NCBI GenBank assembly: GCA_976226885.1
Contig: OZ320323.1
Span: 40,238,001 to 40,302,000, forward strand
From: Iphione sp. A-MEVVRFRX5
Taxonomy: Eukaryota
Reading direction: 5' to 3'
Length of the DNA: 64,000 nt
Every line of letters starts with the position of its first letter. Position 1 is the first letter of the stretch. The notes under the pieces were generated by a model, which searched no databases, was not told the DNA's origin, and saw nothing but the letters and a program-made list of their open reading frames with translations. This document shows positions 45,404 through 62,300 of the stretch, one piece after another. The translations under genes and the position numbers were made by a program.

Positions 45404-45435
<32 letters not shown>

Positions 45436-48400
45436 GACAAAGAAAGAGACCAAATGAGAGAATTGCCAGGTGCGAGAAACAAAGGAAACTTGAACAAATG
45501 AAAAAATGGTTTGTTCTTGATGAGAATGTCCTAAGGTGGTTGATGTGCTCTTGTTCCCTTCTGCCAGACTTGTCGTTGCTAAGGGCAACACGACACGCGT
45601 CCTGTCGGTTATTATGCCCAGCGGGGTTCCGGTCGACGAGGACGGACTTCCGCTCACCTACATCGGCAGTGAAGTCGCCTTACAGAACAGGAAGTTGACG
45701 CAGTTTGGACGAGCGAATCAGAGATGGGATTTCAATGCAGAGTTGGGCATCATTGGAGCGTTCCACACAAATACCTTCGACAAAGGTGCGTTTAATGCAA
45801 ATACCTCATAATTCCATCATGGAAGGTGTTCTATGATAGGAAGTCGAATAATTACTATATATGTATGGCACAGTGAGATGTGTTGCTACTACGTACAGTC
45901 GAATATCAATTCGTAGGTATGTCACATCCATGCACTGACCTTCTCAGTTAGACAACTGTGTCTGCTCACTAGTTCAAAGCCACGATCACATTTCACTGGT
46001 AAGTTCATGTAATCTACTAATTCAACTAACTGTAAGAGTAAAACTTTTTTGCATATGGAAGCTACACCTGAACATGTCGTTATTGTGTCTAGTTGTGTTA
46101 ATCGTTACTTTTACAGTGGGGTTAAACCGATGTAGAATGAAGGATCCTCTCAACGTTGTGGCGTTTTTTTTTTATTGTAGAGGTGACCGCAGCCAACAAA
46201 GCCAATGTCTGCACCTATGCAGTTATGCATGAAGAACAACTGGACCAGCCTGTGAGTATAGCTTCATAGTACTTCTCCTGTTTTTAGCCTTGTGTAAAAA
46301 TAAGATGGGAGGACGCCAAAACTCAGTGAAGTAATTTTCATTTTTGCTTTTGAGGACTATAGTTCAGTAACACAGGTCGTATGTCCCATCCATTACATAC
46401 ATGTGCCCACTAGGATAGTACTTACTATAACTGTGAGGTGATGGTACTCAGGCCCCCAATACACACCAGTTCACTTTGTCCCTAAAAAAAACTGAACATG
46501 ATGACTTGTCTCTGTAGGGTTATAGGGTGGAGCTGCCCACCAAGTCCGGCAACAAGGTCTTCAAGGTGTGCTCGTCTTGCGCCCGCGCCATGAGGGGGCG
46601 CCACAAGTTGGAGCGAATCGCCGGCAACGTGGACTTTGCATGTGATATGGGACAAAGTAAGTGGGCAGTCCTGCATGAAAAGGGCCGGAGGTCCGTATAT
46701 AGCGTTATCAGTAATGTGTTCTTGAATGGAACATTTCTTATGTACATATAGAGGGTTTTCTTGATTTTCTTCCCAAAATATCTTATTTTGACTTCGTTGT
46801 TGGATATATGGAAAGGTGAAGCAGCAGGTTTGGTTTTCGGCATAGCACATGGCTCAGTCCACCGATTTCATACTTTCATACTGAGGAAAACCATTTGGAG
46901 GTATCCTATCCAACAACAGTTGAGCCTTTTCCCAACTGAGAGCTGATTGCTGATCACTCGATCGAAACCACTCTAATGTGGCGCGGTGTTTGCATACAAA
47001 ATAAAGACAGACTATCCATCAATCGCCAACTATGTTAGGGATGAGTTGCCGGCAGCAGGCAGCTTTGACGCAGCCCATGAAGAATTCAGAGAGATTCACC
47101 GAGAACGTTTCATCATGAGGCACTCCAGCAACTTAATTGTCACAACTGACTTTGGGACATCACGTCGACTTTAGTACCAGCATAGGACACTAGGTGTCTC
47201 CCTGAGATACAGCCCAGTGGCGCCACCACAGTCAGCCATCTTGGTTGTTGTCACTTTTAGTCTAGCAGTCACCCAGTTCAGACCTGTCTTAGGATTCTTA
47301 CTGTTCTGTACTGTCACTGTTCTTTCTTTCTGCTATTTCTATCAGGATCACCAAAGGGAGTATTTTTTAAGCTTTACTTTGTTGATTGAACAGATACTTT
47401 GCGAATTGATCAGGGAGATGATGCTCTTTTCATCTCCTTCACTAGTTGCCGTAAGTCTGTGTCCACAGCCACTTTGGCCAGGTGGACGAAAGAGGTCATG
47501 GCGTTGTCAGGTGTGGACACGCAAGTGTTCTCCGCGCATTCTACTAGATCAGCTTCGTCTTTGAAGCTGGCTAAGATGGGAATGCCTTTGTCTGAAATTA
47601 TGAAGAGGGGCATGTGGTCGCATGCCAATACCTTCAAGTTGTTTTATTTGAAGGATATTCGGGATGGTGGACAGCAATAGTCTTTTCACTCATCCTCTGA
47701 GGCTTTGGGCTTTGAAGTCTCAGGGAGACACCTAGTGTCCTATGCTGGTACTAAAGTTAGTGGGTTACATGAACTTACAGTGAAGTGTGACCTTGACTTT
47801 GTACCAGTATTAGGACACAAGTGTCTAACTGCCCACCTCTCCCCTCCCATGTGGGCGTTTAGTTTCCTTCATCCTCATAGGTTTCATTCTCATCCTATTG
47901 CTGCAGGGTTCCTGACTTCTTTGAATAGTGACAACAACCAAGATGGCTGACTGTGGTGGCGCCACTGGGCTGTATCTCAGTTAGACACCTGTGTCCTAAT
48001 ACTGGTACAAAGTCAAGGTCACACTTCACTGTAAGTTCGTGTAACCCACTAATTATCAGCTGTGAATTGATGATTAGTTGTGAATTCGTTTCACACAGCG
48101 GTCGCCCAATCTCCCCCACATCGTCATTTTACTGCTTTTGATATGGTTGGACAGGGTGAATTTTACCGATCACCTCATCGCACAACAGCATCAAAATGAC
48201 GCTGCGACATTGTTTGCTTTCTGCTGGTCAATACTGGGGGCTCTGCTACGACAGTGTCATTATGATGTAAAAAAAGGCAATTGGTCAACTACTATGGCAC
48301 GATTTCCTCTGGCACTAACACGATTTCCTCTCTCATGTACCATATGCTTCTTCCACCCCCCTAAAGGTAAGAGCCTGGGCATCAAGCAGGTTGGCAGCTT

Positions 48401-51400
48401 CCAGTGCCTCAACGGCAAGGTGGACCTGCGGACGAGAGAGGCTGGTCACACCCTGCGCGAGTGGGAGGCTCAGCTTGAGAAGCTCAGGGAGGAGCTCAGC
48501 GTACGCGCCATCGCCAACAAGATCTCAGCTGCTCGGGTGCCCTTCACCATCAAGGTGCTGGCCTACAAGAACGGCCAGGGACGCATCCGACCGGGCGAGC
48601 TCATCATTGGATCCTCGGTGGCCGGCGTAAGTTAGCAGTGCCCAGCATAGATCATCAGACGCGACTGGGTTACCTCACCATTAGGATGAGTTCCTCGCTC
48701 CATTCATGGAAGAGATCTTGTTTGTATTGGGTGTATATATTGATTATGTCAAGGAGCCTGACGTATCCCTGTTTTGTCTTTCTTTTTCTTTTTTGACTTT
48801 AGAGAAATGTATAAAAAAGAGTAGGATTAGATACGGCAGGTACTTTGGCGCAAGATGCACTGAAGCGATTATCATCGTTGTAAGTTTGCTCTCAAAGAAA
48901 TTGCCCAGATTTTCCAGTTAAGGAGGTCTTTCAGATACAGTCGTAATGGATTCCTCGTTGTGAAAAGATAACACAGATTAAAACAAGAGACCGCTATAAC
49001 ACAGTATCCGTCCTGCTCGAATCTTCACTGTGTGTATTATATAACAGGTCGTTTTAATTGCACACCTTTTCCCATGCGCTCATACACACAGATCCTGGAG
49101 CAGTGCACGCACCGCCTGAGCCTCAACCAGGCCGCCCGCCGTCTCTACACGGCCGACGGCTTCATGGTGCTGGACCTGGAGGACCTGGTGCGCTGGGCGC
49201 AGCAGAACTACGTCAGTCAGGCCAAGGCTCAACTCCGCGCGCAGGCGGCAAACAAACCATCGGGTACGGCAGTTAGTAGTAAAAGAACCCCACCCACCCA
49301 CCCACCCACCCACCAAAGAATTTAAAACGACCCAAACAAATAAGTACATGTAAGTGGTAAGGCATGGTTAATAAATAATTGGTACGGCTTGTATGTAGAT
49401 GCATTGGACACGTATAGGTATTCCTCTGTTAACGAATCCTCTCCTAACGAAAAACTGCTGTTTAATGTATCGTGTACTTGTATATGTTGATCGTTTGTCA
49501 TGGAAAAAAGTCTGACTTATGGATCCATTTTCTGACAGAGTTAACATTTGGTCACGATGCACTGACAACCAGAACTCAGATGAGTAACTTGGCTGGGTCT
49601 TTACTCGTACCCAACCCGACACAGCAAATAGAGAGCGATGGCTTCATCCACATGTGGAACTTCTACTGCGCCAAGCCGGGCAAGCTCTATCTCCTGGTAA
49701 GTGGTGGGAGGTGAAAGGATTTTGTATTGATTACCGTCTATACAAGCAGTAGATCTGTCCAAAAAGAGTGGCCTCAGGGCACAACATCTATAGAATTAAC
49801 CACTTACATTATATAAAAGTTTGGTTCAAAAAGGTGTTGCTACTAGATGTAGATGTATAGCTGTACAAGGAATTGTAGAATTTGACTATTTAAGACACTT
49901 ATTACCTCCTGTGCCCGTCTCATGAACTTGTGTAGGTGACTTCCTAAATATGTGAGGCACAATGTAGGAAATGTTCCTTATTCTATTAAAAACGTGTTAA
50001 AATGGTAATATTATTTTCTCTGACTTTTTTCTTAAAATATTCGACTCTATAGCTTACCAAGAAGGAAACTTCATTGTTCGCTTTCTTGCTTTTCTTAATG
50101 TTTTAATTTTTGGGGGGTCTCGATGAAACCCTTTACCATAACTCAGTGATATGCATTAACACGCTATGATAAATAAACAAAATTCTCACGACTCTAGATC
50201 CTGACACCAGATGGTAGGAACAAAAGCGCGTTCCATGTTGAGGACCAGGTGGACTTCGACATCCAGCAGGCAGGAGAGTACAGCGTCGATATGACCAACG
50301 TCTCTGACACACCTTGGTAAGGGAAAAAATATCGTGTGTGTGTGTGTTTTTTTTTAACTCGAGGAGGTTAACGCATGTGGTGATGCTGTTGTATGTAACA
50401 GTGGAGTGATGCTCACTCAACCCAACACCCCCCCCCCCAAATAACCGAACCACCGGCCATCCACATAGGTGGCTGAGTTACGAGCGTACAGTTTTGTTTT
50501 AATTAGTGGAGATTAAGGCAATGAGGAACTCCTTGCACTCATTGTCTCTGACCTCCAATACGAGCTTTGGCGATGTACATGGCACATTCGTGTGAAGTGT
50601 GTGTACCTAGTAAGCATAACCAAAACCCCGTGCTTATCTGAACGATTTCCCTTGAAAGACACCCTGTTTGGTTGAGACAGTGTCACTTTATTGCTGCAAG
50701 TATAAAGAACACTCTAAAAAAACATTTCACGATAATGTGGGGCCTGGGTTGATGAATAGATTTTGGCTTGCGCACTAGGTAGCAAATTCAAACTCCGTCA
50801 AAAGAAGTTTGGTTATCACGGCGTTTTTTTTTTCTCATCATAGTAAACTTGAAGGCTGAGGTAAGGCCATGACCTCATCCTCTTGAGGCCCTAAAATTGC
50901 TCCGGCTGTAAATGAAATGATTCAGTACATTCTTCGGTAATTAACGAAGATATTGTTGCCTGGACACACGCACGCACACAATCGATTTCTGCATATAATA
51001 TATATGCTTATATGGACTAGGGTGCAGAAATCTGGAATTCAAAGTAGGTTTCTCATATTGAGCTGACATTCTGTTCAAAATCCTTGTGTCTTAATGGTGG
51101 TGGGTTTTCAATGTAAAATGAATACAGGTAACTCTCACGCAGGAGACCATCTCTAGTACGGGCGGATATGGTCCCTGTTATAATCTGATCTGCTCTACGG
51201 TCTCTTTTTATATAAAACTATGACTTTTGGTTCAGCAAAAAAGCTGGTCTCTCCCATGGTCTAATCTTCTCCTCCGTGATATGGTCTCTAAGTAAGAGTG
51301 GACTGTAGTCCGTCTGATATTTCACAGGCAAAAGTTGCCGCTTTATTAACAATATCGAATCATTTCTTTATGCACAGGTTTGGCAAGGGGATGGCAGTAA

Positions 51401-53414
51401 AGAAGGGTTGTGTCATTGGTATGTACTGGCCTGGCGAGTCAATGATTCCCTATGACGTGGACGGCAAGGAGTCCACAGAGCTGCTCTCTCTGCCACTGAA
51501 AGGCCCACCCTCGGCCAAGGACACGCTCACCTTGAAGGCATCGCAGCAAAAGGGAACACTGAAATTCTCACTGAACGCCATGATCAAGACCTCAGGTCAG
51601 ATTCGACTTTTTTTTATGCCTTAACCAGTTCGGGGACCTATTTGTATGTACAGTCAGCACTCATCATTTTCACCCCCTCCCCCCCCCCATGTACAGATTC
51701 CATTGTTATATATGGTTGCCCTCGTCATCTTCACCTTCAGTGCATTGATTCCTTGGTAGATAGCTGCCCTCATCATCTTAACCCTTCATGTACGGATCCC
51801 CTGTTTTACAGGTGTCCATCTTCACCCGCGTGTGCAGATTCTCACTTTAAGCTCTCCCTTTAAGTCCTCATCATCTTCAGGCAGTAATTTGTTCAATAGA
51901 GTCAGTGCTTGTGCTGACGAGTCACACACATCCTGCTTACTGGTGCTGCCAGTGAGGAAGGCTTTGCTGATTCACACTCCTGTCAGATGCATGAGGTACT
52001 CTCGGGCTCTCACATGTGAACCCGTCACCACCGCTGGCCGTGGGAGGGTGGGTGGTTGGGGGTGGGGGTTATGGTTGAGGACCAGGACGAGGGGACTGTA
52101 ACCCTCAAAAGTTCACTTTCTTCTTGCCCCTTTGCCTCATAGAGGGTGGGGGAGGGGGTGGGCGCTTAGGAATACATGTACTGCTGTCATCTTATCATAC
52201 ATGTACTGTTGTCATCATGACTTTATGGGCATTGTAACTTCCAAACTACTGCATCATTTGAATCAGTTCAGGTTTTAATTATATGGCGTTTTCCTTTATA
52301 GACACTTACCACTGGCTGATTCTTGTCTTATTTCAAGGGTTTTAAAGGTTGAATTCATGTGTTTTGTAACATGACTGTACATGCGTACATGTATACACAT
52401 ACATAGAGATTCCAAGGCATGGAACCTATGTGTTATGCTCACCCAGGCAGAACTAATTAGTTCCAGTTGACTGAACGACAGGACACAGTAGACCTCGTAG
52501 GTCCTTATTTATCATTGAAACTCTATTCAACATACATTCTTTGTTCAGGTGTTTCATTATATTTTGCTCTGGGTATTATGTGTCAAGATATACTCTCAGC
52601 AATAAATTTACTGGCGTCTCTTTTTTCCCCTTTTTCAGCCGCAGATGAACCTGGTAAGTTAACTGTTTATAACATATAGCTAGTATCAGATTGAATTACC
52701 ATAGTGAATCTCTGCATAAGATACATGTATATATATATATATACATGTACAGGTATAGTTTCTGGCTACACTGCATAGATAGTTGTAAATTGATGGGGCC
52801 TTATTTTCTATACACATAACTGACTGTTCAGTCGAAATCCAATAGACATTCCTTTCCAAAAGAAAGCTTGAATCCTGCATTTGCAAGTTTGCTGCTAGTT
52901 GGCTGCATGGGGAACTGAATGTTTTACTCAAGTTTATCAGAACTTGTGTATGTTCTGCGTGATATTGTTCATTGCAGGCAAAGAGACTTGAATAGAGCTA
53001 ATCCCTGTTTGTCAAAACAGGAGTTTTTCTGCTGTGAGTAAAAGTGTTAGAAATAGGCATGTGTCTCTTCACCAACTATTTAAGAAGTCCGAAGGACTAG
53101 GGATCAATCATCTTGAAGGCAGCTAGTTGACTGTTTGCTCGTGTATTTCCAGTTATGAACGGCAATCTGATGGACAAGGTGGACTTAGAGGAGAGTGACT
53201 GGGAGGACGAGGAGGACGACAACGAGGAGGAGCAGCCGCCTGCTGCCCCGAACAATGACGACGTGGATGACTCAGGTTGGTCGCCATTACATCTGCATAT
53301 ACATGTATATGTATACATGTATATTTGTCCTCCACCTCTAGGAGGGGTGGGGGACCTTAGGATCACTGCTGTCTGACTGTCCGACCTTCCGTCACAACCT
53401 TTTAGTGTAGTTTC

Positions 53415-53450
<36 letters not shown>

Positions 53451-56400
53451 GCGTGCGTGCGTGTGTTTGTGTGTGCGCGCATATGCACACACACTTTTGA
53501 GACGTGGCTACATCCTCTCTTTCTGAAAAAAATTCTTAAGTGGACTCGTTGTTAGAAACTTCGTTACAGCTGGCCTACGTGAATGCACGCGTACTGATAC
53601 AAATTTGTCTCCTTTTGGTATGCATGTTAATTAATAAGTGTTTTTTTCTGACTGCTATAAAGGCGTCTCGTTCCTCGGAGGCTGTGTTTATAAAAGCACA
53701 TACATGTACCTGTAATTTTACCGTTCTCCTATACAGAAGACTTTGCGATCGGCTACGAGGTACTGCCTAACAGGGCCAAGCTTGGCGGCGTCCCTGCCTG
53801 CATGCTTGTGCCCAACCCGACCGAGGAGGTGGAGCAAGATGGCTACGTGTACATGTGGAACTTCTACTGCACCAAGCCGGGCAAACTCTTCGTTCAGGTG
53901 AGGCAACCTTACATCTTGTAAATGTCCTGTTCTTAGGTTGTGTGTGTTTAACGCAGCACTGAAAAAGCAAAGTCTACATATATATATTCACTCAGTTGAA
54001 CTTGACTCTATGTATAGCTGCTTTTTCACAGAGGTAGATTATGATAGTGCCTAAAAATTAGGCAAAGATAATTGGATTTTATATACAAAATTCTCTCAAG
54101 ATAGATACATGTATTGTGAAATTTAGTAGATCTCCCCTTCCAAGATACGACCAGATATCCTAAATTTCTTGTTGAGCTGATTGTTATTCTTATGTATAAG
54201 TACATGTACGTCCATTTTGGTATTGCTTGTTCATAGATTCTAAGACCCGACACGAAGAATTTGAATGCTTTCCATGTGGAGGACCAGGCAGATTTTGAGA
54301 TCCGCCAAGCCGGAGAGTACAATGTGGACATGACCAACCTCGCCAATACACCATGGTATGATATACCACCCGCACCCCCACCCGCAACCCCATACCATTC
54401 CTATGAGCAAACGTAAACGTATTTGTCCCATTGTCCTTTCATCATAAAGGAATGGAATGTACCTAATTCTAACTTTTCAAGTGTTCCGTACTTCCTACAC
54501 TACACTGATATCCATCTTTTGTCTATGGCTCTCTAGCATGAAAATGATGTTGGGGGAGGAGCTTATAATTGAGAGATCGATTGAGAGAGGATGGGGAGAG
54601 GTAACACTGCCAGAGACTTGTTGGCCTTTGGTTCTAGGCAAGGCTAACAAGGTACTGAAAGACTAATCGACAGACTGATTGGTAGAGGTGGGGGTCTGGG
54701 GTGGGGCAGAAGACACTCGATTCTGTGTATAGGAAGTTAGCATGTGGCTGTAAAAGCCCCCCAACCCCACCCCAACCACCACCACCACCACCTTGAGTGT
54801 TCCCCGCTGTGTGTTTATTAGACCATGACGAATGCGATCACTGGACCATGACGAACGCAACCATGGACACGACCACTGGAGCATGAAAATCACACACCGG
54901 ATCAGTGACAATGAAGAAGACAGAGAGACGGATAGCGATACAGGGACAGAGAGAGTGTGTGTGTGTTTGTGCGTGAGAGTTGCGTACATTTAGAAAAATC
55001 TGGGGTAATGTGGGGAGATATACTAAAACGATGCATAGATGCAGCACGCCCAGGGATATTCCCACTGTGGCCGTACCTCCAGTTCGCATCTGTGATGCTC
55101 ACTTTTACTTTCCACCTTTTTCTCGTCATATGTGATATTGTGTTATTGCTTGCCATCAGTAGAATCTGGGTTCTGATCTCTTCTTTGGTCTCCATCTGTC
55201 CATTTCTATCTATCTATCTGTCTGTCTGTCTGTCTGTTGTCTCTCACACGCATGCATGCACTCACACATTTGCGCGTGCCTGTGCACACGCCCACTTACT
55301 CTCTCCCTCAATCCCACAATCCCTCTTTCTTTCCCGTTGGATCATTTCCTCATTGTCTGTTTTCACACTGTCCTCTATCTGAGATTCTCTGTCTCTTCCC
55401 CAAGAACCCACGCTTGCTACTGCTTTGTCCGACTATACACACCCTTGTACTTCCAGGTTTGGGAAGGGAATGCGTGTGAAGCGTGGTTCAGTCATCGGCT
55501 TCTACTGCTCCGGTGAATCCATGATTCCGTTCGACTTGGACGAGACCATCCACCAGGCACCTTTCTACCAGGAGCTCCACAGTCCGCCCTCCATCAAGGA
55601 CACCATCACCTTGAAGACCTGGCAGCAGTCTGGCACCCGCAAGTACTCCCTCAACGCCTTCATCCGACCAGGTAAGGGGTGCTTAGCAAGTGGAATCGTC
55701 AGTATAGAATACAAGGCCGTGGTAGATTTAAACTCATGCTTCAACGCATAACTATGAGATCACTATAGACCACTTGAGATCACGCAAGCACATGACTCAG
55801 AACCTCATGTACATAACCCTGAAAAGACTTATCTGAGAAAACGTACTCGGAGAAAACGTACTAAATGTAAGTTGATCCTAAAAAATCAGGTGCATTTCCT
55901 ATTATTTAGTGCGGTGAAAAGTTTGTTTTTAAAAGGATGAATTGTAGTATGTGAGTATGAAAAAAGCATTCATATGGAAAGAATTTGTCTATTGATATAT
56001 GTACTCCTGGTCCTTTAGACATGCCACGATAGTTCACAGACCTCTCTAAGATGTTGAGAATATGTGATAGTTATGTCTTTGTTATCGTCGTCGTCGTAGC
56101 AAACAAGGTCGATGTGCCCAGCAAAAAATCAGCAGCACCTCCTTCCAGTAAGAAAACGAATGAGAAGACGAAGAAGAACAAGAAGAAGAAGAGGTTACGA
56201 GGACCACACGTGGACACGCCGCCCACCGAGCTGGTGCTCAAGTACCCCATAGAGGTGTGGGTGTCGGGTGGCGAACCGTTCATTAAACCTGAAAGTAAGT
56301 GTAGTTGTATAGTGGTCAGTTAGAGGAATCATGAGAATAATCATTAGTCCCATTTAAAAAAAAAGAAAATAGTCCCCTACCTTCAAGAGTGGGGTGGGCT

Positions 56401-58793
56401 GGGGGTGCACTCTAAGAACGCTACTGGCTAACCATCCGATCCTTCATCAGGACCTCGTGGTTCTTATAATTCTCAAACTATAAGGATAAAAGAATTGATC
56501 TTTTAGTTTGGTACTTTACTGTATGGGCGTTTACCCGTGGTATATTTTGGTATCTTTTAAAGCATTTTAAATGCAAAAGAGGGAGGGAGTTTTAGGTAAC
56601 AAGGGAGAGGATGGATTTACAGTCATTGTCTGCTCACCAAACCAGGAACATTTAGTTTCACCTGATTGCACAGCTGGCCGAAATATGATACGTTATCCAA
56701 CAAGGTCGATGTGCCCAGCAAGTTCCAACACCATTCTCTGAATTAGATCTTTCAAGAACTTTTCAAAACATTATTAAAACACTGTAAAAATGTTATTTCA
56801 TAACATTTCTTCATAAAACATCGTCAAAACGTTATGTGTTTGCTGGGAACGCAACAGATATAACATCCTAAACTGCCTCAAGATACAAAGAGTTGGTTTG
56901 TTAGATCAACTTTATTTCAATGGAACAATATTTTTTATCATCGTCTTTATATCTACCCATGGATCTTCTTTTTTATTCACAGAGGTTGAACGACAGCTCG
57001 TTCACTCTATGCAGCAGAGAGAGCAGCGGGCAGCTGTGTCGTACGAGCTGGAGAAGGAGAAGCACATCCTTCGTCTGATGCAAGGTGACACATCTTATCT
57101 TCAATAATGTGCGATAAACAGAATCTGTAACTCACAAGAGCCTCCTCCAGATTCAGTATTTGCTCTGTACAGTAGTAACTCATCCTGTGAGCAACTCATG
57201 TAGGAGGGCAATTAACAGCAAGTTATACTGGTCCCACCACTTTATAATGCATGAAAAATGGAGCCCTCTAATTAGGGCTACCCCTGTATTAAGGGCAGAA
57301 TTGTCCGCCCCGCCCCCCGTGGTCGCATTAGAGCGTTTCTGCTGTACGCTACCGTGAGGTGGTTACTGTCCATTTCACGAGAAAAGTATGCTCTATTTTG
57401 CTGATATTTAGCTTGCTTTCCGAAGTCTTCCTGACACATAGCATCCACACCTGTTTGGTGGTGTTGTTGCTTACAATTATTGATATATGAGTTAGGTGTG
57501 CACATGGTCTCTCTTGTACCATAAACAAGACTGCTTTGATAAATAAAATTCATAATGTATTCAATATCAAATAGCAGTGGATACCTCTAAGAGCAGTGCC
57601 TGTCAAATGCGACTGTGAGAGCACAGCAACAGAGACCAATGTAGAATAGTAACGCCTTTGTGTTTCCATGGCAACAGGACGCCGTCTGGATGAGATGGCC
57701 TCTGGTCAGTACAAGGCCACCATGAACCCGACCCACCCCGTCCTCATTGAGGGTCACTGGCAGGAGCCGACCGCAGACGAACAGCAGAAACATGACACTG
57801 TCCACCAACTACAGGTAAATAGGACACTTGTAGCAACAGCAACACCGGTAAGAAGGAAGTACAGGTACCTAGGGCAAGTGTTACAAGGGCTAAAAGAAGG
57901 TCTAAAGCATGACACTGTCCACCAACTTACAGGTAGCTAAGTCACTTGTAATAACAGCACTGGTAAGAAGGAAGTACATGTACAGGCACCTGGGGCAAAT
58001 GTGACAAGGGCACTGGTTAACAGAAGGCTTAAAGTATAATACTGTCCATCCACTTCAGGGAACTAGGTCATGTTAATGTATGACAGTGACATTGATAAAG
58101 TCCCGATCAATCCTGCTCATCCAGTTCATAAGAAACAGATTCCCCGACTGTCTCCACATACCGTACTCGGCAGACCCGAATTTTTAACAATTCTTACCAT
58201 TTATGACTCTCCATGATGTTCTCTATCAGTCTTCAATGTGGTCATTATTTCATATCCTCGTACAAACATGTAATAGATTATGTCTGCCAATGATCCTGGG
58301 CAGTCCGCTAATCACGACAGCTCCCCCCCCCCCCCATGACAGCTTTCCCCGCCTACACACATATACCCAGCAGGAAAGATTAAGCCAAGTCTTATGCTTA
58401 ACTATTTCACCTGTTCAGGATAGGAGTCTTGGGGGGGTAATTTTGATCTGTTCCTGCACTCTCCAGTTAAGGTTACCTGGAACAATGCTCGCATGATCAT
58501 ATCTTACTGTTTGCTTTTTCGTTCCATAGACTCACCTCTCTGACATGAGGTCCTCGCAGAAGCCCAAAACGAAAACATGTAATGTGAACACCACCAGCCG
58601 CCTCTACACACAACCCGCCATGGTATGTCAGTGGGTGCTCTTTTCACATTTCAAATCGATTTGGAAGTAGGCAATTGACTGCTTCTAAATTGTCTTAGTT
58701 TTGTAGGTTGCCTCTTGTTTCATCCCATGTATATAAGATGGATAGCTCTCGAACAGTGTATGTGTCACTGTATTATCATTATTATTATTATTA

Positions 58794-58858
<65 letters not shown>

Positions 58859-59241
58859 GGTTTACAGAAGCGTGTGCTCGTATTCCCCAATGGAGAGAGC
58901 ATTGCTCGAGCAGTCTACATCTGGGGGGAGACGGTGGCACAGCTGCTCGATAACTGCACTGTACGCCTCAACCTACGCAAGGCGGGCCGTTACCTCTTCA
59001 ACATGGCAGGCAATGTCGTAAGTTGACACATTCCATAAAAAACAATGGATACTCTTCAAGAAACAGAATTGTTTTTCTCATTCTCTGTCAATCGCACAAT
59101 GGCTGCCTCTTTTCTTCCTAACTTTATTTAGTCTCTTCATTCACTGTCTCTCTCTTTTCTCTTTCTGCCCTTCAAATTGTTTTTGGTCTGTCATGTGTCG
59201 TATGCCTTGTTTTTTCTCTTTTCGCATCCATGTATTCCTTA

Positions 59242-59328
<87 letters not shown>

Positions 59329-62300
59329 TTTTCACTTTGTTTTTTCATGTCTTTCCATTCGTTATGTGCCCTACTTTTTGACCTCAATACTCTGTTACTA
59401 CTTATCGCGCTTTATCCATTTTCTATACTCTTTATTTTGTCTCTCCTTTGCCTTTCCATGTCGCCCTCACCCCTCTCGGACCACCTCTTTTTCTCCAGGT
59501 CTCCTTTATAATTGCGTCCTCTTCTCTGTCTGTCTGTCACTCTGTCTGATGATGTGTCACTCTGAGCTCTCTGCCTACCCCTCTGTCTTTCTCTGTCTGT
59601 CTACCCTTGATCCCCCCCGTTCTATTCTCTCTGCTACTATCCAGTCACATCCAAATATTAAACAATGTCTTCAGAACAATATTTCGACTAGTTTCTTTTT
59701 TGGATGGGGGCGGGCGGGGGGAATCTATGTGGCATCATCAGTCACCCCGAGCTCTCTCTCTCCTCCCTCCTCTTCTTCCCGTTACCCCCCTCGTCTTTCT
59801 GTCCGCTCTTGACCCAGTGTGGATGTATACTTCACAGATCGCCGACATGTCGGAGATCGAGCGCGACCAGCTGCTCTGCGTTTCCTACACCAAGAGTTTC
59901 CAGAGGCCCAAGGAGAGCCAGCAGGACGTGGAGGTGAAGGCCAACTGGAGCCGTGCTCGCCGCCAGTACGGCCCTGGCGCCACCGACATCACTGTCCAGG
60001 CGCAGAAGAACCCCGNNNNNNNNNNNNNNNNNNNNNNNNNNNNNNNNNNNNNNNNNNNNNNNNNNNNNNNNNNNNNNNNNNNNNNNNNNNNNNNNNNNNN
60101 NNNNNNNNNNNNNNNNNNNNNNNNNNNNNNNNNNNNNNNNNNNNNNNNNNNNNNNNNNNNNNNNNNNNNNNNNNNNNNNNNNNNNNNNNNNNNNNNNNGC
60201 TGCTAGCACACTTGTTTGCCGTAGGCTAAGGTGTGTCACTTTGGGGCGAGTTTCTGTAGGCCTCTGTGAACTGAACCCTGGGAAAAATGATTTCTGATGT
60301 AGTTTTGTTTTTTTCTAACCAGAATTGCTCTTTGGTCCCCCCACCCTCCACCCCCACCTTAACAGAAGTTGGGGGGGGGGACCTAGGAATACTGTGGTCC
60401 CACCGTCTGACCCTCATCATCATATTGTGGGTCCCTCTACCTCTGTTAGTCTACAATAAGGACACTCCACACTGGATGTACTCGCCTCATTTTTATAGCA
60501 AAAGTGGAAGCTAGTCATCATTATCATCAAGTCGAGTCATATCAGGTCGACTTCTCTTGAGAATTGGAAGCGAAAATTTATGAGATAAACATAAGCACAT
60601 TTTCACCCACGCTGCTTGGCAGTATCCTGTGGTCACCACGGGATATCTTTAAATGATATATTGGTAAATACGCTTTACTGCGATACAGAGTGGTAACTGC
60701 AATAAGTATTAAAGAAGCATTTATTACAACTTTGTTATTCACCAAAGTATTTTCAGTACACAGTAAAAAGCAAGCAATAGAAAATATAGGAGTTCTTTGT
60801 ATAATCGCGGATATTTTTCAATGTTTTGTCCTTGACCATTTTCCTTATAAATATGTCAGTTAAATTTTGAACGTTTTGTAGTTGTTAAAAATAACACCGA
60901 TACACACTTTTCATTATGAAGACTTTGGACTAGTGTAAGTACTTCTAGGCTCATGCAACCGATTTTTCTCAATGTTGATTTTTTTTGGACTTTATAAGAA
61001 TATATCCTTAACTTTTCCGGTGTAATTTTTTTTTCTATTCAGAATTTCATCACGCATGTTGCAGTCATTCCACGAATTTTATGTGTCACCTGCGAGAAGT
61101 GTTGTTAAGGTGTTATCCCGCTCCCATCATCAGAACATGTTTATATATTTGACTTTTTCTGCAATATTATTAAACTGACCAGTCTATGAAATGCTCGCCA
61201 GATATAACCTAAGGGTGCAGTGCACAGGTTCTTTGGGTGAACACGCCGCGTTGTGTCCAGATCATATCCTTATCAGTTCATACCTTTCAGTAATTTACAC
61301 CCTCCTATCGAAATCGTGTCGGAAAATGAATGAAATGTTCATTGTGTCTTTAACCCTGTATCATCTCAAGCCTTAACGCTACCCCCCTGCTGTTCCTAAC
61401 TCTTTTTTTCCAGGGTCTACATTCCCGACCCTATCTTCTGGAACCTTACCCGCCTCCCCCCTCTCCCACTTACCCTAATATTGTACCTAACTCCCTCCTC
61501 TCCGCAGTCCTTACCCTGTCTCAGAACGACTCGCAAATCTCAGTTAAAGTATCAAATAGTGATGGAAAACAGCAAGGCTATATACCCCTCTTCATACTCC
61601 TCAATGAATATTGGTTTCAACTATCATATAACCTTCAAATATGAAGTCATTTCGCTGCTAGTCCTTTTTTCCACAGCTACGAAAATCCTCTCAGTAATTC
61701 TCTTGTAAACTTTGGTTTGCTATAAGTTGACAAAATTTCACGTTTGAGGCCTATGTGTGTTTTTTTTTAAAGAAATACTTTATTTATGAGGCCTGAATGT
61801 GTCTTTTATTAAAAAAAAAAATTGGCACAGAGTAGCATATCGATGTAAATCTGGTATGTATATGTTAGGTGTCGCCTTTCCTTTGAGTTGAATTATACGT
61901 TGTGAAATCCAGCCAATGTTCTGTCATGTTATGAGTGATTGTAGTTGCGGTGTTATAGATAGTCATTGTCAAATGATGGCGAATACGAAATTGTCAGTCA
62001 CAGTCACTTCAGACATGTATTCCATGGATTCGGTCCTGTAGATGACCATATTGATTTCACTCCTAATTCTGTCACGTTATCTTGTAAGCCAAGGTTACGA
62101 AGAGAGAAATGTTCAAATGCCAATGTCGGTTGTACTTAAGAGTAGAGAATACTTCTTCATTTTAGTAAAGAGAATCTGAGTGAAGCTTGAGTTGTGAAGA
62201 ATCAAACCTTTCATTTTAGGTTGACCCATTCGGACCGTCAGCTCTGGTTGGGAAGAACAGCGCTCAAGCTCCAGCAGCAGCAAAGACGGATTCTGCCTAA
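15714..62300 (+). CDS. DCDC1: Doublecortin domain-containing protein 1 (DCDC1/DCDC5) orthologue, 47 coding exons, about 2,200 aa; six DCX-like domains, ricin-B-like QxW repeats, coiled coil, two inserted 165-aa modules
   Basis: All exons were traced manually with AG/GT boundaries. Cumulative length mod 3 matches the phase at all 45 junctions from exon 1 to exon 46. The DCX signature (KNG...L.xCT.RL.L..AARR.F/Y...VS.GE.F/W) recurs six times. Peptides QRWAIKQEK..GQWKH..V.NP.WNK, PIEVWVSGGEPF and VKANWSRARRQYGPGATDI match DCDC1 as I recall it (not searched). ATG 15714 directly follows an acceptor AG, implying an upstream non-coding exon. Confidence 0.9.
15845..16610. repeat. About 121-bp tandem repeat (about 5 copies) beginning in the 3' end of exon 1
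   Basis: agctt(g/t)tcttta recurs near 15899, 16019, 16119, 16240 and 16359; the last unit is split by a MITE. Confidence 0.9.
16372..16557. mobile_element. Tc1/mariner-type MITE
   Basis: TA|CAGTGGAATCCCTCT...AGAGGTTTCACTG|TA; internally similar to 21319-21498; sits inside the 121-bp satellite. Confidence 0.75.
17574..17804. other. Assembly gap (231 N)
   Basis: N run in intron 1. Confidence 1.
18293..18562 (+). CDS. DCDC1: DCDC1 exon 2
   Basis: cttccag|T..AG|gtgagc; AISQPSPYMQRLAHSHIV...RPQSA...RPVSAPAYR; phase 2-2. Confidence 0.85.
19321..19518. mobile_element. Degenerate TA-flanked MITE
   Basis: tacagtagaac...ctgta with internal ggacac/gtgtcc inverted motifs. Confidence 0.45.
20247..20558 (-). 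pseudogene. PHD-finger-like coding remnant antisense in intron 2
   Basis: CAVCGKGG..VTC...C SNSFHLK(R): first ligands of a C4HC3 motif, later Cys missing; neighbouring frames contain stops. Confidence 0.3.
21319..21498. mobile_element. Tc1/mariner-type MITE (same family as 16372)
   Basis: TA|CAGTGGTACCCCTCT...AGAGGTTCCACTG|TA. Confidence 0.75.
21589..21641 (+). CDS. DCDC1: DCDC1 exon 3
   Basis: tttgcag|A..G|gtaaat; RPLSATYGSSRPSSAKST; phase 2-1. Confidence 0.75.
21722..22010 (+). mobile_element. tRNA-derived SINE, 5'-truncated, with (AATGA)-like tail
   Basis: Degenerate B box GGGTTTGAACTC; body (gtattctggtc.ctcaatt..caata..atggt..tatgctacc..gaggatatg) shared with 22464-22630; tail shared with 26266-26318. 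Confidence 0.6.
22194..22241 (+). CDS. DCDC1: DCDC1 exon 4
   Basis: ttttgtag|CG..G|gtaagg; AFSIYSSGAPSTGSRS; phase 1-1 (skippable in frame). Confidence 0.6.
22330..23200. repeat. Polypurine block followed by polypyrimidine block (low complexity)
   Basis: GA-rich to about 23040, then CT-rich. Confidence 0.85.
22464..22630 (+). mobile_element. Internally deleted SINE copy
   Basis: Head agttacctcagctggtaagagtgctggcta resembles 12199-12228; body resembles 21880-21980. Confidence 0.55.
26266..26318 (+). mobile_element. SINE 3' tail fragment
   Basis: gataggtgaatatattcc.ggt.aaagataca.tgaaa matches 21955-22000. Confidence 0.5.
29987..30105 (+). CDS. DCDC1: DCDC1 exon 5 (start of DCX-1)
   Basis: ttttcaag|..ATG|gtaaga; FSRRVKPLYKKQTHTIVATAFKNGSRSVFTRVAAPSIKM; phase 1-0. 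Confidence 0.85.
30145..30330. repeat. (TG)n microsatellite cluster
   Basis: Pure run 30206-30250. Confidence 0.9.
31035..31197 (+). CDS. DCDC1: DCDC1 exon 6 (DCX-1)
   Basis: cgcag|..|gtgagt; LLEMCTDRLGLPHAARRVFLDDGTEVFHPAEIPRDSDIYISMGENYKNAFKGVK; phase 0-1. Confidence 0.9.
31683..31788 (+). CDS. DCDC1: DCDC1 exon 7
   Basis: caccag|..|gtgagt; QTQQQRTLAWTVNGLAWSAEAQRKPAKSYLSKRF; phase 1-2. Confidence 0.88.
32183..32730. repeat. Degenerate about 21-bp minisatellite (ccccagccaacttaaggttat) followed by a complementary-composition agttg-rich block
   Basis: Direct inspection. Confidence 0.55.
33172..33271 (+). CDS. DCDC1: DCDC1 exon 8 (DCX-2)
   Basis: atatag|..|gtaagt; QLLEPSKRRVLIFKNSQGTEGVEIVADPDRFED; phase 2-0. 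Confidence 0.88.
33547..33640 (+). CDS. DCDC1: DCDC1 exon 9 (DCX-2)
   Basis: tttcag|..|gtgaga; FLVACTQRLELRSYARVLYDWEGREINDLKT; phase 0-1. Confidence 0.88.
33898..34064 (+). CDS. DCDC1: DCDC1 exon 10 (end of DCX-2)
   Basis: tttatag|..|gtgagg; PVLDSCLQTWTTPVLGPLWVSTGEGFSPKG...HYESE; phase 1-0. Confidence 0.88.
34254..34349 (+). CDS. DCDC1: DCDC1 exon 11
   Basis: ttctccag|..ATA|gtaatt (weak donor); LRLAKAEHTREQVKIVAILSMSEGEIEETLKI; phase 0-0. Confidence 0.65.
34666..34755 (+). CDS. DCDC1: DCDC1 exon 12 (coiled coil)
   Basis: ttgtag|..|gtagga; VQKDIEDFNRALKRLKQQMNKLKEMVADEE; phase 0-0. Confidence 0.85.
34959..35045 (+). CDS. DCDC1: DCDC1 exon 13
   Basis: tcacag|..|gtcagt; ELGVGYKLQYMGEYDMDHRLVGAKGIRLK; phase 0-0. 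Confidence 0.85.
35260..35620. repeat. About 182-bp diverged tandem duplication
   Basis: tcattttagcca(a)acaggctctgttcc occurs twice, about 182 bp apart. Confidence 0.8.
35748..35849 (+). CDS. DCDC1: DCDC1 exon 14 (DCX-3)
   Basis: gtttag|..|gtaagt; VYENGSYEDETTLYFNLAQAAKGLGKDQSKLLAR; phase 0-0. Confidence 0.87.
36536..36713 (+). CDS. DCDC1: DCDC1 exon 15 (DCX-3)
   Basis: ccacag|..|gtacgt; LLDECSSHH...AQKIFDKLGNEITNVYDLEYDQEVWLSFGEPWKNPF; phase 0-1. Confidence 0.9.
37287..37398 (+). CDS. DCDC1: DCDC1 exon 16
   Basis: tttccag|..|gtaggt; FVLSAQFDKIRAIDIQGQKQATIREQLMSEDYDGNE; phase 1-2. Confidence 0.85.
37996..38146 (+). CDS. DCDC1: DCDC1 exon 17
   Basis: ctacag|..|gtagga; PNCWEAVHGVPEAYSWMTVG...VQSDFLRAK; phase 2-0. 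Confidence 0.85.
38607..38714 (+). CDS. DCDC1: DCDC1 exon 18 (ricin-B-like QQW)
   Basis: accaag|..|gtaagt; DNPDLLLYVEPTVSNKAKKGSKNLWPPDCQQWVIAR; phase 0-0. Confidence 0.85.
39590..39799 (+). CDS. DCDC1: DCDC1 exon 19 (ricin-B-like QMW)
   Basis: ttcaaag|..|gtacct; DNDHSMTIACKFHPWLVLGVS...DRSQMWRFTEDGTIRNE; phase 0-0. Confidence 0.88.
40437..40586. mobile_element. Degenerate MITE (right TIR intact)
   Basis: Internal aataagacc / ggtcttatt inverted motifs; ends gacactgta. Confidence 0.45.
40757..40908 (+). CDS. DCDC1: DCDC1 exon 20
   Basis: tcatag|..|gtgagt; MHQDLLLTYLGSRFGDED...EGKDAKTQ; phase 0-2. Confidence 0.87.
41288..41475. mobile_element. Degenerate TA-flanked MITE
   Basis: tacaatagactct...agagctttaactgta; resembles 57168-57346 (gtattaaggg, gtggtcgcatt.gag). 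Confidence 0.5.
41541..41664 (+). CDS. DCDC1: DCDC1 exon 21
   Basis: ccgcag|..|gtacgt; WAIKQEKMENLGQWKHTQVDNPEWNKRALSWPVNKEGNVNE; phase 2-0. Confidence 0.9.
42458..42625 (+). CDS. DCDC1: DCDC1 exon 22 (start of DCX-4)
   Basis: gtctag|..|gtacgt; NYDWPMEGFLMPYAP...LRLMVLKNGVRDVSKAIAVVGPDLGN; phase 0-0. Confidence 0.9.
43020..43148 (+). CDS. DCDC1: DCDC1 exon 23
   Basis: ttttag|..|gtacgt; MRKDVSSNKVDKKNKKNAEDTV...DELTVLKLEFIL; phase 0-0. Confidence 0.8.
43348..43591 (+). CDS. DCDC1: DCDC1 exon 24 (DCX-4)
   Basis: caacag|..|gtagga; FLERCTQLLSLPFAARRIFDETGKEH...VYVSCGEPWSDP...ALRDPK; phase 0-1. Confidence 0.92.
43740..43880. repeat. Compound (GA)n/(GACA)n microsatellite
   Basis: Direct inspection. 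Confidence 0.9.
43975..44131 (+). CDS. DCDC1: DCDC1 exon 25
   Basis: caccag|..|gtaagt; LVLEAESLNPGAKLIINH...LPDTLKK; phase 1-2. Confidence 0.85.
44493..44621 (+). CDS. DCDC1: DCDC1 exon 26
   Basis: ttttctgtcggcag|..|gtgggt; GQTHHEVSHQNAEERYNKRKYSWEREG...EATGK; phase 2-2. Confidence 0.78.
45137..45343 (+). CDS. DCDC1: DCDC1 exon 27 (ricin-B-like QRW)
   Basis: cgctag|cag (NAGNAG; alternative start 45140)..|gtaaat; ...EGYIASRADSSLVLGVEE...DDINQRWIIDK; phase 2-2. Confidence 0.87.
45568..45785 (+). CDS. DCDC1: DCDC1 exon 28 (ricin-B-like QRW)
   Basis: ctgccag|..|gtgcgt; LVVAKGNTTRVLSV...GRANQRWDFNAELGIIGAFHTNTFDK; phase 2-1. Confidence 0.88.
46181..46251 (+). CDS. DCDC1: DCDC1 exon 29
   Basis: attgtag|..|gtgagt; VTAANKANVCTYAVMHEEQLDQP; phase 1-0. 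Confidence 0.85.
46518..46656 (+). CDS. DCDC1: DCDC1 exon 30 (CxxC-containing)
   Basis: ctgtag|..|gtaagt; GYRVELPTKSGNKVFKVCSSCARAMRGRHKLERIAGNVDFACDMGQ; phase 0-1. Confidence 0.88.
47170..48052 (+). mobile_element. Non-autonomous, internally deleted DIRS1-like tyrosine-recombinase retrotransposon (883 bp) in intron 30
   Basis: Perfect 54-bp inverted repeat 47202-47255 / 47927-47980, extending imperfectly outward. Bipartite internal complementary region: 47719-47755 is the exact reverse complement of the 5' end 47170-47206; 47757-47831 is the reverse complement (73/75) of the 3' end 47978-48052. Starts with TTT. YR C-terminus lies between the repeats. Confidence 0.9.
47399..47680 (+). pseudogene. 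C-terminal fragment of a DIRS1-type tyrosine recombinase
   Basis: LFISF..KSVSTATLARW.K.VM..SGVDTQVFSAHSTRSAS...G..LSEI...GMWS..NTFKLFY carries H-x-x-R, W and the catalytic Y. In-frame TGA at 47387 upstream (VD*TDTLR). The N-terminal catalytic Arg, RT/RNaseH and gag are absent. Confidence 0.88.
48367..48626 (+). CDS. DCDC1: DCDC1 exon 31 (start of DCX-5)
   Basis: ctaaag|GTAAGA..|gtaagt; KSLGIKQVGSFQCLNGKVDL...IKVLAYKNGQGRIRPGELIIGSSVAG; phase 1-0. Confidence 0.88.
49092..49263 (+). CDS. DCDC1: DCDC1 exon 32 (DCX-5, N-terminal half)
   Basis: cacag|..|gtacgg; ILEQCTHRLSLNQAARRLYTADGFMVLDLEDLVRWA...NKPS; phase 0-1. Confidence 0.9.
49539..49696 (+). CDS. DCDC1: DCDC1 exon 33 (inserted module A, part 1)
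   Basis: tgacag|..|gtaagt; LTFGHDALTTRTQMSNLAGSLLVPNPTQQIESDGFIHMWNFYCAKPGKLYLL; phase 1-0. Confidence 0.85.
50198..50316 (+). CDS. DCDC1: DCDC1 exon 34 (module A, part 2)
   Basis: ctctag|..|gtaagg; ILTPDGRNKSAFHVEDQVDFDIQQAGEYSVDMTNVSDTP; phase 0-2. Confidence 0.87.
51123..51307. mobile_element. Degenerate TA-flanked MITE
   Basis: tacaggtaactctcac...taagagtggactgta; internal gagacc/ggtctc inverted motifs. Confidence 0.45.
51378..51595 (+). CDS. DCDC1: DCDC1 exon 35 (module A, part 3)
   Basis: gcacag|..|gtcaga; FGKGMAVKKGCVIGMYWPGESMIPYDVD...KFSLNAMIKTS; phase 2-1. Confidence 0.87.
52639..52653 (+). CDS. DCDC1: DCDC1 exon 36 (15-nt microexon)
   Basis: ctcttttttcccctttttcag|CCGCAGATGAACCTG|gtaagt; AADEP; phase 1-1; strong pyrimidine tract and consensus donor. 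Confidence 0.6.
53153..53275 (+). CDS. DCDC1: DCDC1 exon 37 (acidic linker)
   Basis: tttccag|..|gttggt; MNGNLMDKVDLEESDWEDEEDDNEEEQPPAAPNNDDVDDS; phase 1-1. Confidence 0.82.
53418..53478. repeat. (TG)n/(TGCG)n microsatellite
   Basis: Direct inspection. Confidence 0.9.
53737..53897 (+). CDS. DCDC1: DCDC1 exon 38 (module B, part 1)
   Basis: atacag|..|gtgagg; DFAIGYEVLPNRAKLGGVPACMLVPNPTEEVEQDGYVYMWNFYCTKPGKLFVQ; phase 1-0. Confidence 0.87.
54237..54355 (+). CDS. DCDC1: DCDC1 exon 39 (module B, part 2)
   Basis: tcatag|..|gtatga; ILRPDTKNLNAFHVEDQADFEIRQAGEYNVDMTNLANTP; phase 0-2; 119 nt like exon 34. Confidence 0.87.
55457..55671 (+). CDS. DCDC1: DCDC1 exon 40 (module B, part 3)
   Basis: ttccag|..|gtaagg; FGKGMRVKRGSVIGFYCSGESMIPFDLD...KYSLNAFIRP; phase 2-1. 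Confidence 0.87.
56100..56294 (+). CDS. DCDC1: DCDC1 exon 41 (basic tract, then C-terminal end of DCX-5)
   Basis: gtcgtag|..|gtaagt; NKVDVPSKK...KKNKKKKRLRG...LKYPIEVWVSGGEPFIKPE; phase 1-1. Confidence 0.88.
56714..56847. mobile_element. Small MITE-like element with CCCAGCAA / TTGCTGGG ends
   Basis: 8-bp terminal inverted repeat; internal aacatt/aatgtt/aacgtt subrepeats. Confidence 0.4.
56983..57084 (+). CDS. DCDC1: DCDC1 exon 42
   Basis: ttcacag|..|gtgaca; VERQLVHSMQQREQRAAVSYELEKEKHILRLMQ; phase 1-1. Confidence 0.87.
57168..57346. mobile_element. Degenerate TA-flanked MITE
   Basis: tacagtagtaac...gtttctgctgta; about 180 bp. Confidence 0.55.
57662..57675. promoter_or_regulatory. RFX X-box consensus match overlapping the exon 43 acceptor region
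   Basis: GTTTCCATGGCAAC fits GTTNCC-ATGG-YAAC. Function untested. Confidence 0.35.
57678..57814 (+). CDS. DCDC1: DCDC1 exon 43
   Basis: caacag|..|gtaaat; RRLDEMASGQYKATMNPTHPVLIEGHWQEPTADEQQKHDTVHQLQ; phase 1-0. Confidence 0.88.
57790..58075. repeat. 117-127-bp tandem repeat (about 2.5 copies) spanning the exon 43 donor
   Basis: catgacactgtccaccaact at 57791 and 57908; third degenerate copy near 58035. Confidence 0.88.
58530..58622 (+). CDS. DCDC1: DCDC1 exon 44
   Basis: ccatag|..|gtatgt; THLSDMRSSQKPKTKTCNVNTTSRLYTQPAM; phase 0-0. Confidence 0.87.
58771..58858. repeat. (TAT)n microsatellite
   Basis: Ends 9 nt before exon 45. Confidence 0.95.
58868..59017 (+). CDS. DCDC1: DCDC1 exon 45 (DCX-6)
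   Basis: ttacag|..|gtaagt; KRVLVFPNGESIARAVYIWGETVAQLLDNCTVRLNLRKAGRYLFNMAGNV; phase 0-0. Confidence 0.92.
59245..59326. repeat. (CT)n microsatellite
   Basis: Direct inspection. Confidence 0.95.
59838..60015 (+). CDS. DCDC1: DCDC1 exon 46 (end of DCX-6; runs into assembly gap)
   Basis: ttcacag|ATC; IADMSEIERDQLLCVSYTKSFQRPKESQQDVEVKANWSRARRQYGPGATDITVQAQKNP, then Ns; donor not visible. Confidence 0.88.
60016..60198. other. Assembly gap (183 N) truncating exon 46
   Basis: N run. Confidence 1.
62220..62300 (+). CDS. DCDC1: Probable DCDC1 terminal exon 47
   Basis: cctttcattttag|GTT; VDPFGPSALVGKNSAQAPAAAKTDSA*. Phase 0 is assumed because the upstream donor lies in the gap. Confidence 0.6.
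   Translation, partial: VDPFGPSALVGKNSAQAPAAAKTDSA

Follow-up and report, generated by a model that had tools for sequence, protein, structure and literature searches.

The window analysed here is a stretch of 64,000 nucleotides on contig OZ320323.1 of the Iphione sp. A-MEVVRFRX5 genome (assembly GCA_976226885.1), and all positions given below are those of the window. Judging from its predicted domains, the window contains part of an orthologue of DCDC1/DCDC5. One doublecortin (DCX) domain of this gene, DCX-5, is not a single contiguous unit of about 90 residues in the sequence: exons 33-40 and two linkers separate the body of the domain from its probable closing strand. The gene is identified as DCDC1/DCDC5 because two DCDC1-specific Pfam families pass their cut-offs, each on a single exon, and because the domain order appears to be the published order of FLJ46154. 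The Pfam matches are Ubiquitin_DCDC1 (PF25510) at 36539-36730, with 55.3 bits against a cut-off of 30.4, and DCX2_DCDC1 (PF24478) at 58868-59020, with 34.1 bits against a cut-off of 27.8. FLJ46154, which was later named DCDC5 and is now part of DCDC1, has a C-type DCX domain, a ricin domain, and an N-type DCX domain (Reiner et al. 2006, PMC1550402). The window has a C-type DCX domain, a ricin-like region, and an N-type DCX domain in the same order and with agreeing motifs. For example, the C-type domain at 43345-43599 reads ..LVYVSCGEPW, and its mammalian FLJ46154 counterpart reads ..ELVYVSCG (PMC1550402).

The exons around the insertion form a consistent set on the forward strand. Boundaries were read from the sequence over 48800-56600 and every splice site was checked by script; in exons 32-41 all acceptors are AG and all donors are GT. 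Exon 31 (48367-48626) ends in phase 0 and encodes a coiled-coil-like stretch followed by strands 1 and 2 of DCX-5 (..FTIKVLAYKNGQG..ELIIGSSVAG). Exon 32 (49092-49263, 172 nucleotides, ending in phase 1) continues with helix 1, strand 3 (RRLYTADG), and strand 4 (FMVLDLEDL), and then with a conserved long helix (VRWAQQNYVSQAKAQLRAQ..). Exon 41 (56100-56294, 195 nucleotides, phase 1 to 1) encodes a Lys-rich linker and then PHVD.PP.ELVLKYPIEVWVSGGEPFIKPE, the return segment that holds the DCX closing-strand motif. Between them lie exons 33-40. The first-pass annotation had described these as 1,128 nucleotides, or 376 codons, bounded by phase-1 introns; this arithmetic is correct, and the peptides that it quoted are present. 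Joining exon 32 directly to exon 41 retains the reading frame, with phase 1 on both sides.

The inserted cassette consists of two copies, A and B, of a three-exon module of 165 residues. Copy A is encoded by exon 33 (49539-49696, 158 nucleotides, phase 1 to 0), which holds the first third of the module, exon 34 (50198-50316, 119 nucleotides, phase 0 to 2), which holds the middle, and exon 35 (51378-51595, 218 nucleotides, phase 2 to 1), which holds the last part. Copy B is divided in the same way among exon 38 (53737-53897, 161 nucleotides, phase 1 to 0), exon 39 (54237-54355, 119 nucleotides, phase 0 to 2), and exon 40 (55457-55671, 215 nucleotides, phase 2 to 1). Each set comes to 495 nucleotides with identical phases. 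Exon 33 is 44% identical to exon 38, exon 34 is 69% identical to exon 39 and equal to it in length, and exon 35 is 56% identical to exon 40. Exons 36 and 37 lie between the copies. Exon 37 (53153-53275, 123 nucleotides, phase 1 to 1) encodes an acidic linker (..LMDKVDLEESDWEDEEDD..). Exon 36 (52639-52653, phase 1 to 1) is a putative micro-exon of 15 nucleotides, proposed solely from its splice signals, a strong polypyrimidine tract with AG and a GTAAGT donor; a counterpart was found in none of the other genomes compared. The cassette without it would have 1,113 nucleotides and would still be in frame.

Comparison with other genomes suggests that the insertion is old and that the exons are real beyond chance. 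The contigs behind seven related fragments (L001-L004 and L006-L008) were compared by tblastn with the open frames of the window. Six of the seven have exon 31, exon 32, an acidic exon, one module, exon 41, and the downstream exons in order, and L003 has the same order until its contig ends before exon 41. An eighth locus, L005, is uninformative, having within 20 kb only the last module exon, among transposon open reading frames. The first-pass annotation had proposed a lineage-specific chimaera. This proposal does not hold, because all seven other assemblies carry the same insertion, as a single copy, at the same place. Nor do the seven loci represent one narrow group, because they differ widely in base composition (G+C content 0.35-0.44, CpG observed/expected 0.36-1.44) and in identity to the window (62-86% over exon 31). 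An acidic exon between exon 32 and the module is found in all seven, with a common start motif, [LM]x.KV.[LF]E.S, followed by a run of Asp and Glu. Exon 37 thus appears to be an ancestral part of the insertion.

The module exons themselves are conserved in sequence and in structure. Exon 38 is 72% identical to its counterpart in L001 and 58% to that in L008, compared with 47% and 39% for the copy A equivalents. Exon 39 is 74% identical to L001, with the same intron position and phase in L001 and L008. Exon 40 is 62% identical to L001 and has matches in L002-L008. In the two loci that were read for boundaries, L001 and L008, the module has all its introns at the positions and in the phases found in the window. 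One intron within the module varies in presence. It lies in phase 2 in a Trp codon (50316|51378 and 54355|55457), and it is present in the window, L001, L006, and L008; the flanking exons are fused in L002, L003, L004, and L007. The loci with this intron have a few extra residues there (..TPW/FGKGM.. versus ..DTPIEV..). In addition, L004 has a Gly/Asp run (GDGDGDGDGGGGGGG) inserted in one loop of the module, at 7722-7958 of its contig. The CpG observed/expected ratio of L004, 1.44, is unlike that of all other loci.

The module belongs to a family that has no Pfam entry. Pfam searches with each cassette exon and with ten related fragments gave no family. When a profile of exons 35 and 40 was scored against 1.84 billion representative proteins, 26 proteins matched, mostly exon-sized fragments of unannotated eukaryotic contigs. 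The few full-length matches (P0006, P0009, and P0019) begin with a signal-peptide-like segment and contain two or three modules in tandem. P0056, from a later search, is a relative of the module with thrombospondin type-1 repeats on record. These secreted proteins, together with P0052 and P0053, have the same module of about 157 residues, and they come from marine eukaryote metagenome and transcript catalogues. The DCDC1-type module pieces are 33-37% identical to the secreted modules over the whole length (E values of 2e-10 and 5e-13). The secreted arrays differ in having two conserved cysteines per module, which the DCDC1-type module lacks, and in having no DCX domain. Word searches for named or full-length relatives found no named protein except one "hypothetical protein", no DCX domain was recorded for any of the proteins found, and cluster look-ups added no name. 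A weak match to the VHL beta domain is found at the end of P0009 (residues 448-502, E value 3e-4, at the cut-off).

Structure prediction suggests that the module is a jelly-roll, lectin-like beta-sandwich. The protein modelled with AlphaFold was the relative P0006 (residues 20-176, alignment of 31 rows) and not the module of the window. The model is all-beta, with a predicted local distance difference test score (pLDDT) of 95.6 and a predicted template modelling score of 0.90. Searches of PDB by sequence, with exon 31 and with the exon 35/40 profile, gave nothing meaningful, and Foldseek of the model against PDB gave no match under an E value of 0.001 and none better than 0.01. In a wide VIA structural search, where a Z of 7-8 is typical of the best match for models without a clear one, the top three chains had Z scores of 12.5, 11.2, and 11.0 with 141-147 of the 157 residues aligned. 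The best was the lectin-like domain of Cwp84 from Clostridioides difficile (PDB 4ci7; Z 12.5, root-mean-square deviation 2.7 A, 141 of 157 residues). Other matches were phage capsid and tail-tip domains (Z 11), two polymer esterases, a polyvinyl-alcohol esterase and an acetyl-xylan esterase, the latter matched through its N-terminal module (Z 8.6-8.8), and PHR, F-lectin, and CBM32 domains (Z 6-7). Cwp84 and the other jelly-roll structures have the modelled fold in common with P0006 at just 6-12% sequence identity. The assignment may be carried over to the DCDC1-type module because its pieces align with P0006 over its whole length. A lectin-like fold predicted in this way does not imply sugar binding, since a common fold shows no function.

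The tandem duplication of the module is private to the Iphione genome among those compared. Two copies are found in the window only, and each of the seven other loci has one. A tree made from the three exon-wise alignments in concatenation (161 columns) groups copies A and B as sisters with support of 93/90. The branch lengths are 0.62 for copy A and 0.14 for copy B. Copy B is thus the slowly evolving copy, and it is the one most like the single copy of the other genomes. Both copies are kept under purifying selection. The ratio of nonsynonymous to synonymous divergence (dN/dS) between them is 0.14, so copy A is not decaying. The duplication is likely to have taken place after the split from the lineage of L001, as the tree would suggest. 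One result weighs against this order of events: synonymous divergence (dS) is larger between copies A and B (2.1) than between copy B and L001 (1.25). The date relative to L001 is not secure because both values are saturated and because the larger one is that between the copies.

The phases of the exons suggest that the module is a mobile phase 1-1 exon set. Modules with phase-1 introns on both sides are the rule in secreted proteins. In the window exons 33-35 and exons 38-40 are both 1-1 units, as is the module in L001 and L008, and the acidic exon is also a 1-1 unit. The same module is found in otherwise unrelated proteins, namely the secreted arrays and the thrombospondin-repeat protein. 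A paralogous DCX repeat of the same gene, at 33.1-34.0 kb, has a phase-1 intron (33633|33898) in the loop between strands 4 and 5. The part of this repeat at 33550-33980, also on the forward strand, includes a middle exon that ends at 33633 in phase 1 (..REINDLKT|G) and a closing-strand exon that starts at 33898 (..PVLGPLWVSTGEGF). The exon that precedes these two has a match to DCX2_DCDC1. Most likely the module was inserted into an existing phase-1 intron in the loop between strands 4 and 5 of DCX-5, and the paralogous repeat suggests that this intron is older than the insertion. The earlier proposal that whole domains were shuffled into the loop is therefore in agreement with the introns that bound the inserted domains, and with the intron at the same place in the paralogue.

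DCX-5 has the features of a canonical DCX domain, but they are widely spaced. Its order of ubiquitin-like elements, the NG in strand 1, the LYT.DG motif, and the closing [YW]V[AS].GE.F signature are common to the canonical domains of doublecortin, DCLK, and DCDC2 (PF03607). The closing signature is provided by exon 41, which ends in PHVD.PP.ELVLKYPIEVWVSGGEPF and contains VWVSGGEPF. In an alignment of seven species the motif of this exon (YPIEVWVS.GE.F) is nearly invariant, and Y48, P49, E51, V52, W53, S55, G57, E58, F60, and P63 of the exon do not vary at all. A hidden Markov model built from three contiguous DCX repeats of the gene aligns the exon 41 motif to their closing strand. In those three repeats 13-14 residues separate a conserved Gly from the closing strand. 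By our own count, joining the strand-4 region FMVLDLEDL to KYPIE.. would give 14. In DCX-5 strand 4 and the closing strand are about 450 residues apart, a distance made up of the helix, the 376 residues of the cassette, and the Lys-rich linker. Even a direct join of exon 32 to exon 41 would leave about 70 residues of helix and linker there, which is not a short loop. Pfam gave no match for exon 31 alone. Exon 32 alone scored 24.9 bits for PF24478 (cut-off 27.8) and 19.8 bits for PF03607 (cut-off 22), values that apply to a single exon and not to the whole domain. The tail of exon 32 is conserved and rich in Ala, Gln, Lys, and Arg, and W35 and Y40 are invariant in the alignment of eight species. 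An AlphaFold model of exon 32 alone, made from the eight orthologues, has one helix at residues 29-53, and this is the best-scored part (pLDDT 83-89).

These results make it probable that DCX-5 is truly split and that the exon 41 strand completes its sheet. The first-pass annotation had claimed that the domain was split by folded domains. That predicted folded domains lie between the DCX body and the canonical closing strand is upheld, but the split itself is not proven. Several points weigh against it. The helix was predicted for exon 32 out of context, with a mean pLDDT of 73. The same three-repeat model also aligns the NYVS of exon 32 to the closing strand (vYVS), so that its positions 33-42 are matched twice, by exon 32 and by exon 41. 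NYVS lies only two residues farther from the conserved Gly than usual. A degenerate closing strand could thus be present in exon 32 already. Under this alternative DCX-5 would end in exon 32 with NYVS as its fifth strand, the module would lie between two DCX-like pieces, and the exon 41 motif would be either the remaining C-terminal third of a further, otherwise missing DCX repeat or a strand that pairs elsewhere. The invariance of Y40 in eight species and the Pfam positions, which leave NYVS about where a closing strand is expected, are in its favour. However, an orphan strand is not expected to keep a nearly invariant and full DCX signature (YP.EVW.S.GE.F) in seven species. NYVS also lacks the GE.F turn that is present in all other repeats of the gene, and its surroundings, rich in Ala, Gln, Lys, and Arg, belong to the best-scored part of the model, where one unbroken helix is predicted. 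It is unlikely, then, that the domain ends in exon 32.

Two other explanations concern the cassette itself. The first goes back to the first-pass annotation, which suggested that alternative splicing might switch the inserted domains on or off. The cassette, or one of its 1-1 units, might be an alternatively spliced switch that produces isoforms with zero, one, or two lectin-like domains, which would be compatible with a split DCX-5. There are four such units (exons 33-35, 36, 37, and 38-40), each of which could be skipped in frame, and the exon 32 donor (GTACGG) and the exon 41 acceptor, with its poor pyrimidine tract, look weaker than the others. However, a 1-1 module that enters a phase-1 intron gives frame symmetry by itself, without any need for alternative splicing, so this symmetry is no evidence for exon skipping. 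The purifying selection on both copies and the retention of the single copy in seven other genomes fit regular inclusion. The protein collections yielded no spliced fragment; none was found that would prove the exon 40-41 or the exon 32-37 junction, and all fragments run on into intron sequence. A splicing switch is unlikely on this evidence. The second explanation takes exons 33-40 as a gene of their own that lies within an intron of the DCDC1-like gene and runs in the same direction. Exon 37 starts near a methionine (MNGNLMDKV), and related modules do exist as stand-alone secreted proteins. The cassette exons, on the other hand, have no signal peptide and no terminal stop, and they lack the cysteines typical of the secreted family. 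The phases at both ends of the cassette fit exons 32 and 41, the intron phases within the module are the same in L001 and L008, and the cassette is at the same place in eight genomes. A nested independent gene is rejected, being highly improbable given the missing signal peptide and stop, the fitting phases, and the conserved position.

Vertebrate DCDC1/DCDC5 may have part of the same structure. Like the window gene, it is a multi-DCX protein with DCDC1-specific Pfam families and an N-type DCX domain that starts with ..AYKNG.G. Exon 31 matches the start of the mammalian FLJ46154 N-type domain, KIIAYKNGDG (PMC1550402 supplement). The human, cow, and rat sequences of this domain are listed only as far as ..YTKDGT, and the dog sequence continues with TVLSLRDLVLWALDESF (PMC1550402 supplement), which resembles DLEDLVRWAQQNY of the window after the strand-4 region. 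The full dog continuation, TVLSLRDLVLWALDESFIQRNTEK (PMC1550402 supplement 1), matches ..YTADGFMVLDLEDLVRWAQQNYVSQ of the window and not a canonical closing strand. It thus appears that mammals have at least the start of the outgoing helix in common with the window gene. The first-pass annotation gave vertebrate DCDC1 only a short loop at this place, and this is doubtful, because the published dog FLJ46154 starts the same outgoing helix (DLVLWALDESF...) after the strand-4 region. None of the papers found in this analysis describes an insertion of this kind. It is conceivable, though it must be regarded as doubtful, that the insertion dates back to the origin of bilaterians and that vertebrate DCDC1 has it too. 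A general feature of DCDC1 proteins would in that case be a DCX domain that folds around a domain of an unnamed lectin-like family, which is shared with secreted thrombospondin-type proteins.

Other parts of the host gene are also conserved. The DCX repeat at 43345-43599, before the ricin-like region, is 77-86% identical to its counterparts in L006 and L008 and is a good anchor for orthology. Four ricin-like exons lie upstream of DCX-5 at 45150-46661. They contain QRW motifs (..DDINQRWII.. and ..GRANQRWDF..) at the place reported for the ricin-type lectin domain of FLJ46154, and Pfam searches with each of these exons singly gave no match. They are kept in L001, L002, L006, and L008, and the last two are also found in L004. 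In the intron between the ricin-like exons and exon 31 (47170-48052), an open reading frame at 47396-47659 matches part of a transposon open reading frame of 480 residues in L005 with 32% identity. Runs of N are found at 17574-17804 and 60016-60198, with DCDC1-like exons on either side. The rest of the DCX-6 domain cannot be read because the second run comes shortly after the DCX-6 exon (58868-59020).

Overall it seems fairly likely that an old and conserved insertion of a domain is present in the DCX domain that follows the ricin-like region, with one module as the ancestral state and two in the Iphione genome. The chain would leave DCX-5 after strand 4 through the long conserved helix at the end of exon 32 and pass through the acidic linker of exon 37. 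It would then form the lectin-like jelly-roll beta-sandwich encoded by exons 38-40, and come back through the Lys-rich linker to supply the closing strand YPIEVWVS.GE.F in exon 41. In the Iphione genome a tandem duplication of the three-exon module added exons 33-35, followed by the possible micro-exon. Both copies have been retained under purifying selection, with the new copy evolving about four times faster. The two DCX parts would assemble into one fold, and the insertion would be included constitutively. The module might then serve as a platform for binding partners, held away from the microtubule-bound DCX domain by the helix and the oppositely charged linkers. The functional data found all concern vertebrate DCDC1/DCDC5, which is reported to have cytoplasmic dynein, Rab8, and Rabin8 as binding partners and to function late in cytokinesis (PMC4756281); no link between this binding and the insert is known. 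A search for literature that connects DCDC1 with cilia or the axoneme brought up no paper mentioning DCDC1.

For the annotation of this genome, exons 33-40 and their neighbours make up one gene and should not be separated. The species-specific duplication adds modestly to these findings. A domain family without a Pfam entry is now defined, and it occurs in secreted arrays and inside a cytoskeletal protein; the phases of its exons agree well with module shuffling. DCX domains are regarded as compact units that bind microtubules, and to our knowledge no domain insertion in the doublecortin fold has been described. If the split of this conserved DCX domain is true, the fold would tolerate a large insertion, a whole beta-sandwich in its last loop. 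If the insertion is of bilaterian age, an extracellular-type module was recruited into a cytoskeletal protein. In vertebrates DCDC1/DCDC5 is linked to dynein- and Rab8-dependent traffic in cytokinesis (reviewed in PMC4756281), and the insert would suggest that this protein has a further binding surface, so far unstudied.

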